In this document: one piece after another, positions 1-62,284 of the stretch
Numbering within the stretch: position 1 is the stretch's first letter
How the letters are laid out: each line of letters begins with the position of its first letter
DNA from: Mytilus californianus
Taxonomy: Eukaryota
Assembly (NCBI RefSeq): GCF_021869535.1
Contig: NW_026262679.1
Span: 84,940,001-85,004,000, forward strand
Reading direction: 5' to 3'
DNA length: 64,000 nt
Notes under the pieces: generated by a model
Seen by the model: the letters and a program-made list of their open reading frames with translations, nothing else
What the model was told of the DNA's origin: nothing
Databases searched by the model: none
Made by a program: the position numbers and the translations under genes

Positions 1-2074
1 ATATCTGACAAATATCTCAGCTCAAAACCACTTGATTTAAAATCTGATGACACTAGTGAACAACTGTGGGTCAAGGTGCAAATTATAGGGTCACCTGATT
101 TGTACGTAGGGAGTTTTTATAAACCTCCAAATAAAACCGAGGAGGACTATTTAACACACTTAAGAAAATCTATTTCCAGAATAAGACGTAGGTGGTGATT
201 TTAATCATGGTTGATTGGAATAATTACTCATTAAAACAAAAGGCATACAATACAAAACAATGTCAACAACTTATTGGCATATGCCAAGAAAACTATTTAG
301 AACAAGTTGTAACAACACCAACACATTACACAAGAAACATCACAGTCCATACTTGATCTCTTTTTTACTGATAACAGCTCCCTAGTAAATAAAACTGAAG
401 TTATTCCTGGAATATCTTATCACGAAATTGTATATATCGAATCGAATTTAAAACCTAGAAGGGCGAAACAAATACATAGAAAAGTATTCCTATAGAACAA
501 AGCAAATACTGAGCAAATTAAAGAAAAACTAAATAACATAGATCTTAACAATATTGCAAACATAGTAGAACTCACAATGGATCAACTTTGGGATAATTTC
601 AAAACAATGGTATTGAAAACCATGGAAGAGTCAATTTCAACCAAAATGATAAATAACACAAAACAGAAACTACCGTGGGTTAATAAAGAGATAAAATCAC
701 TCAATAGAAAAAGGAATAAATTGTTCCAAAAATTGAAAACAGACTCACACAATAAAATAGGTAAACAGTACAGGGATACAATGAAACAACTTCAGAAAGT
801 GACAATAAAAGCCTACTGGACATATCTAGAAAACATCGTTTGCTATGACGAAAGCTTAGAAACTTCACAAAAACAGAAAGAGTTTTGGAATTACATCATG
901 TCCACCAGTTCAGGAGTTGCACAGTTAAGATGTGAGGGCATGCTTGATAGATGACAAAAAAAAGGCTGAAATACTAAATAAACAATATCACTTTGTTTTA
1001 CTCCTGAAAATGATAAAGAATAAATACCAACTATCTATCTTTGTCAGAAATACATTTAACATCACATGGTATAGAAAAACTCCTAACAAATCTAGATCCG
1101 TCTAAAGCTACAGGTCCAGATGAAATACCAGCACGCATACTAAAACAATTTGCATCACAATTTGCACCACTCTTACTTTCATTTTTAACACATCTTTTTT
1201 GAAAGGGGATGTACCATCAGACTGGCGACAGGTAAACGTAATTTCTCTATTTAAAATACCTAGCCAGTAACTACAGGCCTGTCTCCTTAACCTGTTTAAG
1301 CTGCAAACTCTTAGAACACATTGTAGTATTGACGTTACAACCTTAAACATTTGGACATGCATAGCATTCTATTGGGCAATCAGCATGGTTTTAGAGCAAA
1401 ACGCAGCTGTGAAACAAAACTTCTTACATTAAGTCATGAATTACTAATTAACCTTAATAATGAAATACAAACTGATCTAATTATTTTAGACTTCTCCAAG
1501 GCATTTGACAAGTTACCTCACAAAAAATTATTAAGGAAGATGGGTAATTATGGCATAAGGGGGAATACTTGGAAATGGGTATCAGGAAAAGTAGTGGACC
1601 CAAGACTGTGCAACAGGTTGTCCTTGATGGGGAGGTATCTAGTCAAAAGCCTGAGGTCATTGGAGTGCCTCAAGGCTCAGTCTTGGGTCCACTACTTTTC
1701 CTGATTTTCATAAATGACCTCCTTTCAACAGTAACATCAGAAACACGCTTGTTCGCAGATGATTGTAATTTATACAGAACAATTAAAAATCAGCAAGATT
1801 GTACCATCTTACAAAATGACTTAAACTGACCTAGCCAATTGGGAACAAACTTGGGTTATGTAATTCCACTCAGAAAAAATGAAACTCCCTCACTGTAACA
1901 AGATGACAGTCACCATACAAACAAGAATATGTACTGAAAGGCCACATTTTAGAATCCGTCAGCACAGCAAAATATCTTGGTATCACCTTATCCAATAACA
2001 TGTCATTGGATATCCATATTAACAACATCACTGCTAAAGAAAATAAGATCTTGGTTTTTTAAAAAGAAATTTAA
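1..2074 (+). mobile_element. Decayed non-LTR retrotransposon (CR1/L2 group) ORF2, 5-prime part: AP endonuclease plus reverse transcriptase
   Basis: Frameshifted frames give endonuclease-like motifs (LYVGSFYKPP near 100, GDFNH near 195, LDLFFTD near 352). RT motifs: KATGPDEIPARILK (about 1103), NYRPVSLTCLSCKLLEHIV (about 1268), QHGFRAKRSCET, LDFSKAFD, GVPQGSVLGPLLFLIFINDL, LFADD. ORFs 577-954, 1351-1704 and 1569-1829 are pieces of it. The start lies upstream of the window. Confidence 0.93.
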
Positions 2075-5000
2075 AGGGAAACTTCGCAAAAACTTGAAAA
2101 ATTGATATTATGTTCATTATGTATAAAAAACACAAATTCACAAATATTAATGTTTTATTCCACTAGATAAGAGATCAGCATCGATTTTAAATTGAGATTA
2201 TCAATTCTTTACATGTAGCCATCTTGACGGCTTCCCTATTAAATAACCACGTGATATCTATCAACCACAAAGGACCAAAACAAACAGGGACTAACGTAGT
2301 CATAATTCAGTGTCGAAATCATTTGTCAGGCGTACGGTTGTTTTAACCCGACAAGATAATGACAAAAGCAATCACAGTTTCCAGGATCCTAAAAATAGAA
2401 TTATATCAAACATGGTTGTACTACCTTTCGGCAAACCTTTTAAACTAACTTGATACGGAACAATGTTCCGTGTAAAATTGTTTTCAAAAATCTAGTTTGG
2501 TCATAAGTCTTTTATGCAATACATTTATTTAAGTCTGTCCTTCTCTAATTTGATCATCAGCATGGCTAAAGGAATTATTGCCAGAGGTATTGTGAGGTGA
2601 CACGTCCAGGTATTCAAGCGATTTCCTGTCGGGCTAAAAAAAACCTCTTTATTACACAATTACATAATGCAGGTTCATACATCGCTTTACTGCAGAGCGT
2701 ATCAGTGTACACGCTTGGAACTTTCCATTAAAAACTATCAGATGTAATATACATCATGTGTACATTTCCTCCCCCCCCCCCATCCCCCCCCCCCCCCCCC
2801 CCCCCCCCCGAGTCCGACAGTGATATACTAGTCATTGCTAAACTCATACCTGTACACAATTTTACTACCACTTGTTTATGAATGACATTTCTGGTGTAAA
2901 GAATGATATTTATTAAAATCTAAATAATTCCAGCTAAAGATTTGTGGAAATAAAATCTTTTTAGATACTTCCTATGGTAAAATTTGGAAAAATGTAAGTA
3001 TATACTCGTTGTCAATGATTTGAAAACATAGCCTGTTTAAATTTATTTCACAAACACGTATGCATTTGTCTGTCATTCAATTTGGTTTATACAGATAGAA
3101 AGTTACGGAACTATAGATAGTCACAATATAATATATATATATATATATATATAAGAGAGAAAAGAATCATATAAATTGCATACATTTAGCATATTTCTGT
3201 ACATCATAGGAACGGGTATACGAAAAATTTCTCAAATGTTGTAGGGCGGAAATACACACATTTGGTATATAAATATAAAATATACACACATCTGGTAGAA
3301 AATAAAGTCTCACCAACTAAAGATAGCATTTTATATATTTTTGTCATTCTTGGTTGAAATGATGGAAGGAGTCATTTAGAAAAATGTACATGTACGCTGT
3401 GGTATAGTAGTGGTAATTCAACTCCCTAGAAAATGCGTATAGCTGCAGTTGCATAGTTCACACCATAAATCTATTTCCAGTTTATTTCTGTCATATATAT
3501 ATATATCTCTGGTTAACAACAAAAAAAATATTTCAAAATTTGAATTTGATGTGACTTACCGTTCATCTTTTTTTTCCTCTTTTTTTTTGGGGGGGGGGGG
3601 GGGGTGGGTAGGAGTGGGAGGTGGTATACATTGTTTAACTGTAGAGTCAATTTATGATTCTAATCTTACTTAAAAAGCATTTTCCAAAAGGGAATTTAAA
3701 AACAACTCACTGCTATCGAAAGTTACAGATGAAAACGTAAATTTACAAAAAAAATTAGTTCCTGGATGTATTTTAAAAATAAAATGTTAGTTATGTGATT
3801 TAAGTTGAGAAAAAAATGTTAGGCAGAATTTAAACCATTTACCCCACCTAGGACACCTCTTAAAAGATGACTGGTGATGCTTTACAATCTTGATAATTTC
3901 TGTGACATGGAACCTTCTGTTTAGGTAGTGATTTACCTTTACATTTTCGGATATTACAGCGGAGCTCAATGTATATTACCTGTATAGTGAAAGCTGCTGT
4001 CCAATGACGTCTCACGTATGTACAGGTTTATATTTATATTTGCGTTCAAAACCTATTTATGATAAAAAGGTTTTATGACATTCACAATTCTGCATGTTCT
4101 GTATACCAAATTCTTTTATGACATTCACAATTCTGCATGTTCTGTATACCAAATTCATATTTTATTTTCAGACCGAATGAGGATATGTAATTTTTGAAGG
4201 AAACATATTGACTATCAAATTAATTTCGGTGTTTTTTACTTAGTATTAAATCGTAAGAAATTTAAAATTACTGCTTGTCCACCAAGCCACCAAGTACTGT
4301 AGCCGATATTATGGAGTATTCTATGTATTTACAAAAAGAATTTTGTTACTGGATGTAATTAGAAATATTTTTTTTAATCTAGTGATATAAGTTGAGAAAA
4401 AAAATCTAGTCCCCACCCAGAACTCCTCTTTATTCAAGAATAGTCATGCTTTACAATCGTGAGAATTTCTTTGACATGGTACATTCTGTATAGGTAGTTA
4501 TTTACCTTGACATTTCTGGGTATTACAGAGCTACATGTATATTACCTGTATATGGTAAGGTGCCGTCCCATGAAGTCTTACGTATACGGGTTCACGTTTA
4601 TAATGGCGTTCAATACCTTTTTCTAATATAACAAGATTTTATGACATTCACACTTCTGAATGTTCTGTTTACCAATTTCATATTTTATTTTCAGACGGAA
4701 TGAGAAAATGTTTATTTTCAAGGAAACATACTGAGTATCAAATTAATTTCGGTGAGTTTTTTTCTTGGTATTAAATCACAGAAGTTTAAAAGTACTACTG
4801 CTTGTCCGCTTGTCCGAGTATTCTTGTCTGTTTAGAGTGGGAATAATGTGTCTTACTGAATAATATGAATGACAAGTCTTGCAAAGGTACAAGATATAAA
4901 GCACATTGAAAATCCGATTCCTCCAGTCTGTCTTAAATACAAATCACAAACGTGTTCTTCCACTGAATAATATATGATTGAAACGCTTCAGCCGAATTTA

Positions 5001-52718: not shown

Positions 52719-52801
52719 ACTATGACATTACCATGGTAACAGTACAATTTAATTCAAAACTGTTGAATTAAATTGTACTGTTACCATGGTAATGTCATAG
52801 T
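52719..52801. repeat. Perfect palindrome, 39-bp arms, 5-nt loop
   Basis: ACTATGACATTACCATGGTAACAGTACAATTTAATTCAA-aactg-TTGAATTAAATTGTACTGTTACCATGGTAATGTCATAGT. Confidence 0.97.
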
Positions 52802-53530: not shown

Positions 53531-54550
53531 CTGAAATGATAAAAATTTCAAGGTGATCAACCTGTAGAATATCATTATCTTACCTCTGCTATAACATTAA
53601 TTTCAGAGGAAACCTATTTACAAGAAAACAGTCATACAACATTTCTGAAAGAAAGAATAAGTTTTCAAAACCATGCATAATTAATATTGAATAGTTTTCT
53701 AAATCTTTATATATGTTGTGTGTACAATGTGGGTAATTTACTTATACTACTGTCGGTTCAGTCTTTTAAATACATGTACTTACATTGTAAACCAAACACA
53801 TGTACATTGTATACAAAAATCATTTCTAAAAATTATTCAAAAGAATAATTTACTAAAACTAACATTGTAATTTGACTTTATCTGTACAAAATCTGATTTT
53901 ATTGTTTAAGTTTAATGCATGATTAAACATATAATGGTATCCTGGATAGCATTTCACAATAAATTGCTTCGCCGGGCGCAGCTGGATACGACCGCAGAGG
54001 TCCAACCCTGAACAGTTGGGGCAAAAACGGACATAATATTCGCGCTTGATACAGGTCTGAATTTGGATTGTAATTAAATATTTGACACATAAAAGGTTTT
54101 TGACACAGAATAACTGTAGTCAAAGAACTTAGAATTGGTTATATGATTTGAATTTATATTCAATTTTTTGCTTTTGTGCAATACACTTTGCTGTTGCGAA
54201 TTGACCCCCCCCCCCCCCCCCCTTCCCCCCACAAAAAAAAAATAATTTACCCCCCCTTTTTTTTTTGCTTTTGTGCAATATACTATGCTGCTGCGTATTA
54301 TAAATTTACCATAGTGCTACCTTAATCTATTTTATAATAGAATTTAAAATATGGTGTCAAATCTTTCATATGGATTTTTTTGTAAAAAAAAAAAGATGCA
54401 ACATTTGCAGATATTTTTACTGGTCTTCCTTTATAAATATGCATTTCTTCAAACATAATTTAAAAGCAGTGTAAGGGAGGTAATCAAAACGTTGTGTTTG
54501 GATTACCTCCCTTACACTGCTTTTAAATTGTCTTAAGTAATTGCTCATTA

Positions 54551-55199
54551 GGGTGCTATAAACAGTTTCGTATAAAAAACAAGGGGTATTTCCCCAGTGA
54601 GATTTACATACTGATGGAATACCCTGCTATTTATATACCACTGAATGAAAAATTTGATTGTTTTTTATGTTTAATGTGAAAAACATATATTGAAGTTCAA
54701 TTAAAATGCCACTTTTGTCAAGATTTTCAAAAAAAAAAATGTTTTTGTGACTTCCTACTATATGGGAGGCAACTCCATAAACAGCTGATTTTCACCCGTT
54801 GCTAAAAGCACTTTTTCTTGTCAGGTAAGATAGCGACTCTCGGAGCAGGAAAGCATACCCTGAAACTTCATTATCTAAAATCAGCCGGACAAGCTCTTCG
54901 AAATACACCTTATTAGAAATATGTGCCCAGGTTATTGATCCATGGGCCCAAAGGTGGTATGTTTTTACGGTTTTTTACAGGGAAAATGCCTCATTTGCAG
55001 CTTATAACTTGTACCAATTTGCATTTTAAACCAAGAATTGTTGGAATTATTTTTATTTATTAAAAAAATTCATGGAATTATCTTTCCGTTGATGTATAGA
55101 TATCTATATAACTATGAATATTTGACTTCTATATGATGGGTCCAATTGTTCATGCCCTGTTACATAATGACTTCACGTAAAAAACTATTGATTGCACCC
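54551..55199 (+). repeat. Left long terminal direct repeat (649 bp)
   Basis: Begins GGGTGCTATAAACAGTTT and ends AAACTATTGATTGCACCC (15/18 inverted match). Confidence 0.95.
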
Positions 55200-55471
55200 T
55201 TTAGGCCTCAGAAATATGCACAAAAAATCTAATTTTTCTGTTTAAGATTTTTCAAGACAGCTTAGGTGCAGTTTTTTTTCAGCATACACATATCATTTGT
55301 CATTTTTGTGACCATTTATGCTCAATTGCAAGTTACTCTGGGTTTATTTCATGCATAAACAGTATGTTATTGAGTCCAACGAGAAAGATAATTTTACCAT
55401 GCTTTTTACAAATTTTTTTCAGAATATTCAATAATAGTTGCATATAATTTTATTACCATTTGTTTCATGAC

Positions 55472-55839
55472 ATGTCCAAAGCGTATGAAACTGAATTTTC
55501 AGATGAAGAACAGCAATATTTAAAGTCTGAACTTTTTCACTTTAATAATATTAATGGCTGTCATATTTGGTATGGAACATCAAACGCAGATGGATATGGC
55601 ATTATAAGACCAACTTTTCGAGGCAAAAAGCAAAATTTCACCGTACACCGCCTTCAATATTTTTTGGCAAATGATTGCAAATTTTCTAATATCAGTCACC
55701 ATGTTTCACATTTATGCCACACAAAGAAATGTTTAAATATTGATCATTTATCCTTGGAACCTGTTATAATAAATATCGAGAGTGTAAACCTTTTAGTACA
55801 TGTCAAGGACATAATGGTTTTAAAAACTGTATATTCTGA
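55472..55839 (+). CDS. His-Me finger (HNH, zinc-binding-loop homing-endonuclease-like) nuclease, one frameshift
   Basis: GCHIWYG...DGYG...TVHRLQYFL...VSHLCHTKKCLNIDHLSLEP in ORF 55460-55894. After a shift near 55770 it continues YRECKPFSTCQGHNGFKNCIF* (TGA 55837-39), completing the Cys/His Zn site. Confidence 0.88.
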
Positions 55840-55877
55840 GGTAAGGAAAGAAAAAACAGTTCAGTTGGTTTCACATT

Positions 55878-57692
55878 TTAATTATTTACATTGATTCCAT
55901 AGTTATGGATTTCATTTATATCATTACAACGGCTACTATACATTGAACCTAGTCTTACTCTTCTGTTCTGTCTTTTACACTTTGCCAAAAATTTTTGAAT
56001 TTTATATTTTGCTGTTTTTTTTCTTTGAGAATAGTATATCTTTTCGTATCATAAATTTAAAGAACGGAGCACATTTAGAAAAATTAAGTCCAAGAGATTT
56101 AGCCAATAAGATAGAAGATTTTCCAGTTCTAAATGTAGAGGAGTGACATGCAGAATGACATAAACCAGGAAAATTTCTTTTATGTAGTACAGATTTTGGA
56201 GCATATGTGAAGACACGGTGATGCAAGCTCTCGCATTGATTTGTTGTGTGAAGACTAGAAATTTTATTTAAAACATCCAAAGAAAGAGACTTATTTAATG
56301 CAGATTCTATTTTTTTGTTGTCTACCACACTAAGATTCAAATAAACTCCATATGGCAAGAATTTTGTATTATAAGTGTCCAAATGTGCACAGCAGGCTAC
56401 AGAATTTGAAACAAGAGACAATATTTTTGATTGCTGACTGTGCTAAAGTTGCAAAATTATGTTGTTTACTAATTTTGTGAATGCGCACTAACTTGAGCCT
56501 AACCCTTGATCTAATGCAAGTAGCCAATCTTTGCCGAAAAAAGTCTCTGTCATAACCAGGTTGTAATTTAGAAAAAGTTAAATTTTTTATATACTTTTGA
56601 ACAGTGCGAATCGATGTACAAAACATTGATAGTACCGGATGGAGTTGCCTGACTTTTTTCCAAATTCTCTCACAACTTTACTCAATTGAGCACTTGCATC
56701 ACTGGTCACAGATTTCACTTTTAAAATTTTAAGATCATTCATTTTTTGTAAAAAAATTTCGGCAAGTTTGCCTTCACTAGAAGAAATGGTTTCTTCAGAA
56801 CTATAAGTTTTCTTACATTCATTATGACTACAATTAGTTTTCTTGTTGCAAAGTTTGTTAGTGGTTGACATTGTCATAAGTAGATTAAGTCCAGTATTTT
56901 TTTCAATTAGTGGGCAAAAGGACTGTGTACCGGCCTCATATCCGACTTGGTTTCTGTTGTTATAGGCCGTGTCAACTTCATTTTCTTTTCCTATGCAGTG
57001 ATTAAATTTTTGAACAAATTGCTGATTTTTTATCATTGCCGCTTCATTTAATTCTATCATTTTGTCACATTGTTTGTTGACATTTGTAGATATTAACTGT
57101 AAACTTGGTACCTTGATGTTAAGACATGCTAGGGCCATTTGTAAATCTGTTCCACCCATTTTTGTTTTTAGTACTGCAAGAGTCATTGCCTCATGGAGGT
57201 AACCAGCAGCTGGTCCTCTGCTTTTTTTTTCACATTCAGTGTAAACTTTACGGGACCTTGTGTCAAAATGGCATTTCTCACAAATGGCACGAAGAGAAAT
57301 ACATAAGCCCATGCGCTTTGAAATAGCCACATCTACTTTTGAATGGTTCCTGCACCTGTGTTTTATGCACTTTTTTTATAAAATCTTTTTACTTTGAAAA
57401 ATTTACTATGATGTTTTCGGAACAGTCCTCCTGTTCTTCAGTTTCCTCCTTATGGGAATGACGAGGCCGCAGTCTTGTTGGCAATGTATTTGCTGCACGG
57501 TTATGCTGTGTCAGTGCAGCTTCATAAATTTTCATTTCAGGTTTACTGATTCTGATGTTTGCAGCATTTGAAGGATCTGCTTCAGCACCTAATTCAAACT
57601 GTAACTTATTGTTCCAAGGTGTGTAACCTTTGTTGAAGTTATTTTTTTTTTCTCCTCAGTTTTTTGTTTTTCCTCCTATCTTGGCCAGGCAT
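55878..57692 (-). CDS. Kolobok-type DDE transposase, broken by several frameshifts
   Basis: ATG at 57692, FNKGYTPWNNK N-terminal motif after a poly-A shift. Consecutive minus ORFs 57330-56587 (C-x2-C, EVDTAYNN, SVTSDAS, CFVHR), 56626-56369 and 56421-56002 (TTNQCESLHHR). A further shifted tail ends near 55878. Candidate catalytic D, D, E lie in those motifs. Confidence 0.85.
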
Positions 57693-58466
57693 TTTGAACT
57701 TTGTATTTTAACTTTGTTTCAAATGAAATATTTTGGTCTGCTATTGATGACCTCACAAATGTCGCTATGACGTCAAGATTGTCTCAATGATGTTAATAGA
57801 CAATAGCAGATTTATTTTATTTACATATGTTGAGAAAATTTTTATAAAATTGCCAAGTGCAAATGAAATATTGTTTAATCTTTTTATTTTACTTTCTTCA
57901 TTGTGTGTGAATTTGCAAATTTGAAATTAAAGGATTATCTCCCCCTTGACCACAAATGAACTCTATAATATAGAGGTGTGTATTTTTTATTTTGTTGATA
58001 ATAAAATGAAAAAAAGTTGATTATTCATGGTTCAATATGTCATATTAGAATTTCTTTACTAGGTTGACTGTCGTTTATTGTTAGATATTGGCTTTTTCAT
58101 TGTTATATGTTTTATTATGTTAAAAATCCTGGTTTATGTGTACACCATTTTAACCATACAGTGCAATTATATGGCCAGAATTCATTGTGATTGACCTTTT
58201 CTAGAAGTTGAAGTCTCTGTTGATCATGTTATCGATTTTATTCAACAGAAGAATGAGTTGCAATAAATAATGTCTTCACAGATTTAATATTCAGATTTTT
58301 CATCTTATTGCCTCATAGAAGGTTTGATGCATTGCATACTGAAATGACAATATCTCAGCCATTTTTACACCAAAATACAAGTTCAAGGCACCAAAATGCC
58401 TGAAATGACACTGGGTTTGCAACTTGATGCACAAATGGATTATTAAAAGACATGCTAACTGGTTAA

Positions 58467-59123
58467 GGGTGCTATAAACAGTTTCGTATAAAAAACTAGG
58501 GGTATTTCCCCAGTGAGATTTACATACTGATGGAATATCCTGCTATTTATATACCACTGAATGAAAAATTTGATTGTTTTTTATGTTTAATGTGAAAAAC
58601 ATATATTGAAGTTCAATTAAAATGCCACTTTTGTCAAGATTTTCAAAAAAAAAAATGTTTTTGTGACTTCCTACTATATGGGAGGCAACTCCATAAACAG
58701 CTGATTTTCACCTGTTGCTAAAAGCACTTTTATTTGTCAGGTAAGATAGCAACTCTCGGAGCAGGAAAGCGTACCCTGAAACTTCATTATCTAAAATCAG
58801 CCGGACAAGCTCTTCGAAATACACCTCATTAGAAACCTCAAATATGTGCCCAGGTTATTGATCCATGGGCCCAAAGGTGGTATGTTTTTAAGGTTTTTTA
58901 CTGGGAAAATGCCTCATTTGCAGCTTATAACTTGTACCAATTTGCATTTTAAACCAAGAATTGTTGGAATTATTTTTTATTTATTAAAAAAATTCATGGA
59001 ATTATCTTTCTGTTGATGTATAGATATCTATATAACTATGAATATTTGACTTCTATATGATGGGTCCAATTGTTCATGCCCTGTTACATAATGACGTCAC
59101 GTAAAAAACTATTGATTGCACCC
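58467..59123 (+). repeat. Right long terminal direct repeat (657 bp)
   Basis: Differs from the left copy by about 12 substitutions and one 8-bp insertion (hand count). Flanked by TTAA on both sides (58463-66, 59124-27). Confidence 0.95.
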
Positions 59124-59935
59124 TTAACCATTACTTTATACATAATTTAAAAGCGGTGTAAGGGAGGTAATTCAAATGATAAGTTTAAATTACCTCCCTT
59201 ATACTGCTTTAAATTATGTTTTGTACTAAAGTTATTGTTCATTAACCAGATACCCTTGTTTTTTTTCCCTTTTTTGCCCTAAACGGTTTTAGCCATAACC
59301 CCCCAAAGCAAATCCTAACCATCCCTTTGTGGTATGGAAACTTGTGGTATAATTTCAGAGAGATCCATACACCATTCCACAAGTTATTGTCTGGAAACTA
59401 GAAAAATGCTTATATGGGCCCCTTTTTGGCCCCTTATTCCTAAACTGATAAGACCATCACTCCCAAAATCAATCCCAACCTTCCTTTTGTGGTTATAAAC
59501 CTTGTGTTTAAATTTCATAGATTTCTATTTAATTATACCAAAGTTATTGTCCGGAAACCAATTGTCTTCGGACGACGACGATGACAACGACGACAACGTG
59601 ATACCAATATACGACTGCAAAATTTTTTTGCGGTCGTATAAAAATGTGTATGATAATCTTACTTTTCATGCTTGTTGTACATTAAATCGTAAGCATTTAC
59701 CCATTTAGATTTTTTTTAACCTCAGATTTTGATGTAGAAAATGATTTAATCAGAAGTTTACATGTACAGATGGTAACTGTTACTTGTAAGTCAATTTGTA
59801 GAGGATTAATATCTGTGGAGCAAAAAATGAACAGTCGAAAAACAGAAAATGCACAAATTTTTATATCAAGAAGCTGTTGCTTTTAAACTACAATTGCACG
59901 TAATTGGATTTATCTGAATAATAAAGTAAACAAAC

Positions 59936-60063: not shown

Positions 60064-61327
60064 CTGAAAAAAAAAGGTCAGAAATATATAATTTATAATT
60101 TCAATCTGTTAGTTAAACATGTAAACTAACATATTCAAATTCTGTTACTAGCAGGACAATTATTCCAATTGTTGAAGGCCGTACTGTGACCTATAATTAC
60201 TCTTATTCATATCAGCGTAATATAAACTCTGGTGGATAGTTGACTCATTGGCAATCGTACCACGTCTCCTTATTTTTATATTGTAAAGATCCATATCTTA
60301 TTATTATTTACACAAATAAACTTACTTTTTCTCTACAGAGTTCAGTCTAACAGACTCTTCCCCCTCTCCATCATCTATAAGATGCATTAGAATTATATTT
60401 TTACATTAAAATCTTGTGAAAAATAAATAACTTTACTATTTCATCAGGGCCTAATCTAGGATTTTTGAAAAGGAAAAGTGACTTCTCCTCCCATGAGAGA
60501 GTACGGAGAAGTGGTCAACTTCTTGGAGAAGTGAAATTATTGTTTCGGTTGCGTTGTACATGTATTTTAGTGCTTACAATCTATCTGGCTGATATCCAGT
60601 TGAAATTAAACAAAAGAAGTGAAACTCTTTATTTGAGAAGGTAAAAAAGGCTAAGTTGGTATATTTGAATTGTTTACATCTGTTACTATGGGCTTTAAAA
60701 GTTTAATGTAGGTGCATAATTTAGGATTTTATGCATCTTATATATATGTTTTACTTAAATCATAGTATGGAGCTTCCAGATATTTGTTAACTTTAAAATT
60801 GAAGACAAATTTTCACAAAAGAGTCGATTGTGGTAGGTGTAAATTCATGTGGATCTTTTTTGTGCATAAGCATATATATATATAAATTTCGCCAATAAAA
60901 ATTCCACAGAGATATAAAATTGATCTTTTTTAAGCATTAATTTGCATTTCTGCCCCCAACAACAGTTTTTTTTTTGAAAAAACCCTAAAAATGGGCAATA
61001 ATTTCATCGAAAAGGGAAAGTCGAGTACACCTTTTTATGTTCAGGCGTGTTTGAGTTGACTATTTTGTCTTGAAAACATATAAAGCAAAAATATTTGATA
61101 CATCATATCGCTTCAGATTCTATTATTTTATATATTTGGGCTACATGTACAGGTTGATATAATAACATAAAAAACTTACAGTACTAGAAAATGTAATATA
61201 TGGGTCAAGTGAAATACCTTTCTAATGAGTCATAACAACAGAGCTGGTGATTCAAACAAATTTTACTGAAAACTCTTGACAAAAGACTTTACAAGTGGAT
61301 ATCTTAAAAATGCATAACTTAAAAAAA

Positions 61328-62284
61328 TAAACTGCTTCGCCGAGCGCAGCTGGATATGACGGCAGAGGTCCAACCCTGAACAGTTGGGGCAAAAATTGAC
61401 ACAATATTCAAGCTTGATACAGGTCTGAATTTGGATTGTAATTAAATATTTGACAAATTATAGGTTTCTGACACAGAATAAATGTAGTCAAAGAACTTGA
61501 AATTGGTTATATGATTTGAATTTATATTAAATTGAAGATTTCTTGCTGTTGTGCAATACACTGTGCTATTGCGCAATACTTAGTAAATCTGTTTTTAGAC
61601 TATATACAAAGAATTTGCAAAATAAATAGTGACCCCCAATTTTTCTTTGGAAAATTGACAATTTCTTAAATTTGATGGAAAAAATTACCAACCAACCCCC
61701 AAAAAAAATAACGTTTGAAGAAATTTTCTTTTAAATTTCTTAAATCTTGAGGGAAAAAAATGCCCCCCTCACCAAAAAAAAATAATGTTTTTTTACCCCC
61801 CTCCAAAAAAATAAATAAATTTGAAGAAATTATCTTTTTTTGTAAATTGTGGTACAATTTAAGAGACATCCACACAAATACACTTAAACACAAGTTATTG
61901 TCTGAAAACTAGAAAAATGCTTGTTTTAGATCCTTTTTGGCCCCTAATTCCTGAACGGTTTAGGCAATTATCCCCAAAATGAATCCCAACCTTCTACTTG
62001 TGGTATTGAACCTTGTCGTACAATTTCAGAGCAATCAAAATACATATACACAAGTTATTGTCCTGAAACTAGAAAAATGCTTTTTTTGGGCCCCCTTTTG
62101 GCCCCTAATTCCTAAACAGTTGGGACCATCACCCCCAAAAACAATCCCAACCTTACTTTTTTGGTATTGAACCTTTTGTTTAATTTCATAGAGATCCATA
62201 CACTTAAACTAAAATTATTGTCTGAAACCAAATGTCTTCGGACGACTACGATGTGATAGCAATTTTTTTGCAGTCATATAAAAA
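61328..62284 (-). mobile_element. HINE, third copy of the family
   Basis: actgcttcgccgagcgcagctggatatgacggcagagg at 61331, two to three units of about 155 bp at 61870-62230, terminus cttcggacgac...ttttgcagtcatataaaaa. Confidence 0.8.

Follow-up and report, generated by a model that had tools for sequence, protein, structure and literature searches.

Does the stretch from 54551 to 59123 in this part of the Mytilus californianus genome represent one transposable element, and of which kind, or have two short repeats come to lie by chance around unrelated genes? The stretch belongs to a window of 64,000 nucleotides (contig NW_026262679.1, assembly GCF_021869535.1), which was analysed as a whole and whose numbering is used throughout. 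It has the look of a long terminal repeat (LTR) element, and a first-pass annotation made from the letters alone had read it as a composite-like DNA transposon of the KolobokP lineage, carrying a nuclease and a transposase between two direct repeats. In the present study, we conclude with a probability of about 95% that it is one KolobokP monomer of the clade whose long terminal direct repeats (LTDRs) measure ~660 bp, closest to KolobokP-1B_MyEd, which was inserted as a unit and is now dead. The lineage was published by Kojima and Bao (2022, Mob DNA 13:24; PMC9587614).

Results

The monomer consists of an LTDR, an internal region (INT) and a second LTDR, and lies within an interspersed repeat of the host. 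The features, including the terminal inverted repeats (TIRs) of each LTDR and the two copies of the target site duplication (TSD), are as follows.

54301 to 54550: left portion of the interspersed host repeat, which is ~770 bp long and of high copy number; hairpin at 54452-54534; paralogs align from 54301 across the junction
54548 to 54550: left TSD copy, TTA, from flank comparison and paralogous empty sites
54551 to 59123: whole monomer, LTDR-INT-LTDR, 4573 bp
54551 to 55199, + strand: left LTDR, 649 bp, with TIRs at 54551-54568 and 55182-55199
55200 to 58466: INT, 3267 bp, first letters TTTA and last letters TTAA; its reverse complement resembles, by eye, the start of KolobokP-1B_MyEd-I (Data S1)
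55472 to 55839, + strand: predicted His-Me finger (His-Cys box) nuclease pseudogene, starting MSKAYETEF, with the stop TGA at 55837-55839 placed by homology and a frameshifting deletion at ~55782-55786
55878 to 57692, - strand: predicted Kolobok-type DDE transposase pseudogene, with ATG at 57692-57690 and stop TAA at 55880-55878
58467 to 59123, + strand: right LTDR, 657 bp, with TIRs at 58467-58484 and 59106-59123
59124 to 59126: right TSD copy, TTA, from flank comparison and paralogous empty sites
59127 to 59644: right part of the host interspersed repeat, with a hairpin at 59147-59213

All 4573 bp were inserted as one unit with a 3-bp duplication of TTA. The outer flanks share these three letters only. 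Among first-look genome candidates, the left flank (54400-54550) gave 1782 and the right flank (59124-59300) 1219, and at 4 paralogous loci the left and right matches share exactly 3 bp. When 80 nt of each flank were joined with a single TTA, gapless alignments of 160 nt at 94-96% were obtained with at least 5 paralogs; when 2 kb of each flank were joined, more than 20 paralogs ran uninterrupted from 54301 to ~59644. Since these empty-site paralogs are continuous with one TTA, the repeat of ~770 bp was therefore split by a single insertion of 4573 bp which duplicated TTA. The TTAA duplications expected by the first-pass annotation are absent; a TSD of 3 bp is usual for the clade with LTDRs of ~660 bp (Table S1, PMC9587614). 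Contig joints which skip ~4576-4600 bases, one of which links 54547 to 59124 and shares 3 letters, were considered as an empty allele and rejected: the flanks belong to a repeat whose depth runs from tens of thousands to about a million, and the contigs therefore probably come from paralogs.

The limits of the two direct repeats were set by global alignment, in which they are 98.15% identical over the aligned bases, with 12 mismatches and two indels, of 7 bp and 1 bp. An initial repeat search had placed them at 54550-55201 and 58466-59125, in three blocks split by small indels, and the left LTDR was found by the alignment to end at 55199 rather than 55201. Both LTDRs start with GGGTGCTATAAACAGTTT and end with AAACTATTGATTGCACCC, which is an imperfect inverted terminus of 18 bp with 15/18 positions matching. 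The first-pass annotation was right about the position of the repeats, their identity of ~98 percent and the short inverted termini of each (GGGTGC...GCACCC). These GG...CC ends fit the 5'-RR/YY-3' termini of KolobokP. TTAA adjoins the right LTDR on both sides. Between the LTDRs, the nuclease gene on the + strand is convergent with the transposase gene on the - strand, and their stops are 38 bp apart.

No signal of reverse transcriptase, gag or integrase was obtained among the interior coding pieces scanned, as had been claimed for this LTR-like element; only the Pfam domains PF05551 and PF20700 were matched. An LTR retrotransposon, for which these three genes, TG...CA ends and a TSD of 4-6 bp are expected, was considered and rejected on these coding pieces, on the match of KolobokP proteins to 55884-57664 and on the TIRs of the repeats with their GG...CC ends.

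The open reading frame (ORF) at 55460-55894 on the + strand matched zf-His_Me_endon (PF05551) with an E value of 1.7e-7 and 31.9 bits against a cut-off of 27. It has 13 database homologs, mostly of ~124 aa and all with PF05551, which cover just the first 72% of the ORF and place the true start, MSKAYETEF, at 55472. The residues S83-H84-L-C86-H87, C91, H96, E100 and N105 are invariant in the alignment with 12 homologs. Past codon 107, the homologous C-terminus (...C..F.TCQGH.GFKNCIF) runs in another frame, and the second Cys/His cluster is cut off because of the frameshifting deletion near 55782-55786.

The single nuclease ORF had no match among PDB sequences, and I-PpoI was reached by a profile of 12 sequences alone (E 1.5e-4 to 4e-4), so that the likeness to this His-Cys box homing endonuclease, which comes from a group I intron in Physarum (PDB 1A73, 1EVW, 1CZ0), is one at profile level only. 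In this alignment, S97/H98, C100, H101, C105, H110, E114 and N119 of I-PpoI correspond to S83/H84, C86, H87, C91, H96, E100 and N105 here. The His-Cys box is defined by the catalytic residues H98, N119 and H110 of I-PpoI and by two Cys/His zinc sites; of these, the catalytic core and the first zinc site are preserved here, and the second zinc site is found in the shifted frame only. These residues assign the predicted nuclease to the His-Cys box (I-PpoI) group. It differs in that I-PpoI is encoded by an intron, whereas the nuclease here is encoded by a transposon and has its second zinc motif out of frame.

On the - strand, the piece from 57330 to 56590 matched PF20700 ('Mutator-like transposase') with an E value of 2.9e-20 and had 332 relatives in the representative protein library. 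It is 92% identical over 247 aa to one of them (P0014) and 54% identical to an intact relative of 626 aa (P0016). On the contig that encodes the latter, a PF05551 gene of 126 aa lies convergent at 43 bp from the 3' end of the transposase gene, against the gap of 38 bp here. A tblastn search with the relatives recovered a formerly continuous gene of ~626 aa that begins with the ATG at 57692, ends with the stop at 55880-55878 and now lies in three frames; with KolobokP proteins, 55884-57664 was accounted for. The pieces keep the Kolobok blocks DTAYNNR, CCHC after the first D (C-x6-C-x-H-x2-C), VTSDAS, CFVH (the C/DxxH motif) and a Cys/His cluster, CC-x-H, before the E of CESLH. The domains foreseen for both proteins were recovered, PF05551 above its cut-off and PF20700 as above, and the identification of the minus-strand protein as Kolobok-type is upheld by the retained CCHC, CFVH and CESLH signatures and by P0014.

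The transposase gene is broken by at least 5 frameshifts, near 57642, 57371, 56610, 56400 and 56039, one of which lies within the last zinc finger. The reading frame also has a stop within it at 57391-57389 and has lost 12 bp, in frame, at 56971, beside the first catalytic D. The nuclease gene has decayed by one frameshift. Judged from these reading frames, both genes are pseudogenes, and the copy is dead and now a non-autonomous fossil.

An apparently intact KolobokP interior was seen in a Logan contig of SRR26958238 (L081, 3525 bp), with a transposase of 626 aa at 925-2805 (+) and a PF05551 nuclease of 126 aa at 2848-3228 (-). This transposase is 54% identical to the piece analysed here.

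In the genome, the same interior is joined to the same LTDR at three further loci, on C154 (96-97%), C132 (83%) and C165 (74%). Two solo LTDRs of the family were also found, with 87-89% identity and 3-bp TSDs of their own, ATA and TTT. No multimer of this family was seen in the genome, where those of sister and non-autonomous families are plentiful, and the repeat search found no second LTDR-INT unit within the window. Neither the 1-bp indels (57371, 57642) nor the 12-bp deletion (56971) occur in the copy on C154, which is 97.2% identical in the INT and has other indels of its own. Contigs of other runs, under two organism labels, carry versions without the base that makes the stop at 57390, without the 1-bp indels at 57371, 57642 and 56610 and without the 12-bp deletion; on contig data these may be alleles or paralogs alike. 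All other copies of the family that were fetched are full of stops. A search with P0014 gave no open transposase frame of this family in the genome, the best open frames being just 49% identical. No RNA reads were found on the interior in run X21, of which ~6% was read; this is no sign of expression and no proof of silence.

Dating of the insertion by the divergence of the LTDRs (1.85%) was considered and rejected. A cut-and-paste element takes both repeats along and they are not regenerated with each move, because of which their identity is no insertion clock and their divergence dates the last homogenisation. The ~98 percent identity was read by the first-pass annotation as a recent insertion or homogenisation; the figure stands, and its use as an age of insertion does not.

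Sister families form arrays in the same genome. At C1:37817066-37842447 and C13:31326181-31330494 (loci L013-L030, of which L018 was inspected) there are tandem arrays with a period of 1427 bp. Their units, 98.8% identical among themselves, consist of an LTDR of 657 bp (GGGTGC...GCACCC) and an interior of 770 bp bounded by TTAA, and the LTDR resembles that of 54551-59123 only over 45 bp at its start and ~34 bp at its end. These arrays have the look of a non-autonomous KolobokP in the form of an (LTDR-INT)n multimer, for which KolobokP-N1_MyEd (2070 bp, LTDR 663; Table S1, PMC9587614) serves as comparison. Six long sister arrays, known from search tables alone, lie at C13:34724457-34781288, C110:118959264-119124595, C2:27386192-27458017, C88:39606401-39676181, C154:57867443-57912520 and C99:49331438-49385157, with periods of ~4260, 3710, 4050, 3718, 3689 and 4450 bp, respectively. 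Most of their units have open frames, with a transposase of 653, 682 or 490 aa and a nuclease of 130-167 aa, and the array on C110 has at least 45 nuclease matches across 165 kb.

The host repeat has sharp ends, two related hairpins of ~80 nt (54452-54534 and 59147-59213) and subrepeats at 59302-59398 and 59462-59558. It has at least 1200-1800 genome candidates; its depth in contigs is very high, run X21 gave many RNA reads on it, and some of its paralogs reach leftward to ~53955. A direct repeat of 188 nt (53943-54130 and 61311-61498, 89% identity), probably another interspersed repeat, flanks the whole region. Further to the left, at 52719-52801, there is a perfect palindrome with arms of 39 nt that are 100% complementary and a loop of 5 nt.

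Discussion

The published KolobokP elements have LTDRs of ~450 or ~660 bp, each with TIRs of its own of 11-18 bp, perfect or imperfect, and with 5'-RR/YY-3' termini. Their TSDs are of 3-5 bp, and of 3 bp in most families with LTDRs of ~660 bp (Table S1). Their DDD/E transposase bears a CCHC motif behind its first D, has a C/DxxH motif and carries a zinc finger ahead of its last E; a His-Me finger nuclease, a relative of I-PpoI, is encoded downstream on the complementary strand. The lineage also occurs as solo LTDRs and as (LTDR-INT)n multimers, in which bivalves are especially rich (PMC9587614). The LTDR length, the TIRs of each LTDR, the RR/YY ends, the 3-bp TSD, the DDD/E transposase motifs and the convergent His-Me nuclease were all found at 54551-59123. 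This layout, and a transposase close to KolobokP-1B_MyEd_1p, support the KolobokP interpretation of the first-pass annotation. Its suggestion that this family may not be characterised is not borne out, the family being already published from mussels (PMC9587614).

In the supplements of that paper, the LTDR start in + orientation and the N-terminus of the nuclease had no match, the consensus being printed in the opposite orientation; the link came through the transposase motif and the reverse-complement termini. Exactly two entries of the alignment have the motif YYQCFVHR, KolobokP-1_MyEd_1p and KolobokP-1B_MyEd_1p, and P0014 reads almost letter for letter like the latter (Data S3). Furthermore, the printed starts of the LTDR and INT consensus match the reverse complement of 54551-59123 by eye. 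KolobokP-1B_MyEd of Mytilus edulis has 4657 bp, LTDRs of 655/656 bp, a TIR of 18 bp and a TSD of 4, with 8 LTDR and 7 INT copies (Table S1, PMC9587614). It shares the LTDR-INT-LTDR layout, with 4573 bp and LTDRs of 649/657 bp here; in its orientation the 18-bp TIR starts with GGGTGCAATCAATAG and the INT begins with TTAACCAG, and both are the same here. Its transposase is 92% identical over 247 aa, with P0014 as proxy, and its copy number is low, as is the handful of copies here. It differs in that both genes are broken in the copy studied here. KolobokP-1_MyEd (4666 bp, LTDR 656, TSD 3, TIR 18; 206 LTDR copies in M. edulis) and the clade with LTDRs of ~660 bp share the 656-bp LTDR, the TSD of 3, the TIR of 18 and the blocks YYQCFVHR, VTSDASAQ and NQCESLHHR (Data S3), but the KolobokP-1_MyEd protein is more distant from the element here than that of KolobokP-1B_MyEd (PMC9587614).

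Several points weigh against our interpretation. By a hand count over ~90 nt, the DNA identity to the KolobokP-1B_MyEd consensus looks to be only ~85-90%, so that 54551-59123 may instead belong to a sister subfamily or be a species ortholog. For KolobokP-1B_MyEd, a TSD of 4 is listed in Table S1 (3 for KolobokP-1_MyEd), against 3 here (PMC9587614). The Pfam label of the transposase domain is 'Mutator-like' and not Kolobok. The single-base frameshifts could in principle include assembly errors; even so, an intact transposase gene is very unlikely, given six breaks and a stop. Moreover, the roles of the two proteins are taken from homology.

Among the other explanations, two independent insertions of miniature inverted-repeat transposable elements (MITEs) of ~655 bp could have come to flank an unrelated stretch with transposase and nuclease remnants, which the first-pass annotation had itself named as a case that would refute its reading. 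Each repeat is indeed self-contained with its own TIRs, the right one is bordered by TTAA on both sides, and solo copies with TSDs of their own exist in the genome. But the host repeat becomes continuous with more than 20 paralogs when the 4573 bp and one TTA are removed, the interior recurs, joined to the same repeat, at three further loci, and the published consensus also has the form LTDR-INT-LTDR with an INT bounded by TTAA (PMC9587614). A chance composite is refuted by the empty-site paralogs, and we regard it as extremely unlikely. A related doubt is whether the unit was cut out of, or recombined from, a tandem (LTDR-INT)n multimer, or is a segmental duplicate, rather than a primary product of transposition. 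Sister KolobokP multimers are abundant in this genome, and LTDRs with 98% identity would fit homogenisation within an array; however, the TSD of 3 bp is clean and the empty site can be reconstructed exactly in the unrelated repeat of the host, both of which speak for the transposition of a monomer, and no second unit lies nearby in the window. We regard this origin as very improbable.

The match to PF20700 (E 2.9e-20) could also suggest a Mutator-like element (MULE) instead of Kolobok, all the more as the transposases of Kolobok, MuDR, P and hAT are related (PMC9587614). The PF20700 label is generic and alone is no proof of MULE membership. Mutator elements and MULEs have long TIRs and typically a TSD of 8-10 bp. 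Here the TSD is of 3 bp, the TIRs of 18 bp lie inside direct repeats with GG...CC termini, and CCHC after the first D, CFVH and the Cys/His cluster before CESLH are signatures of Kolobok and KolobokP in a protein nearly identical to a curated KolobokP protein. There is hardly any chance that the element is a MULE, and a KolobokP monomer remains the preferred reading.

How such a KolobokP monomer would move can be proposed from its family. The DDE transposase would recognise the 18-bp inverted termini on each LTDR, and each LTDR here has self-contained TIRs. If the two outermost termini were used, the whole composite would move with a 3-bp target duplication; the insertion of the unit and its 3-bp TSD are directly seen at this locus. 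If the two termini of one LTDR were used, this LTDR would move alone, and solo LTDRs with TSDs are seen in the genome. The His-Cys box nuclease would cut a specific site and induce unequal crossover, which may lead to (LTDR-INT)n arrays, according to the hypothesis of Kojima and Bao (PMC9587614); the two convergent genes observed here are both inactivated. By analogy only, bacterial composite transposons such as Tn10 and Tn5, with two IS copies and cargo, also have end modules with inverted termini of their own, movable alone or together. Unlike Tn10 and Tn5, the end modules here are non-coding direct repeats, the transposase is encoded internally, and the element resides in an animal.

Conclusion

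The element was correctly recognised, its kind is already known and ordinary, and it is non-functional in this copy. For annotation, it would be right to mask 54551-59123 as a KolobokP monomer that lies nested within an older interspersed repeat, and its ORF remnants should be listed neither as host genes nor as an 'HNH endonuclease' or a 'Mutator-like transposase'. Knowledge of the target of the nuclease and of its possible role in the formation of arrays is not advanced by this dead copy. Given the less damaged contig versions in other individuals and under a second species label, it is conceivable, though on balance unlikely, that this family, low in copy number, has not died out in the species and that an autonomous copy still segregates. 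A surviving copy, if true, would leave the identity of the element unchanged, and the long sister KolobokP arrays with open frames would be, if true, good material for testing nuclease-induced unequal crossover.

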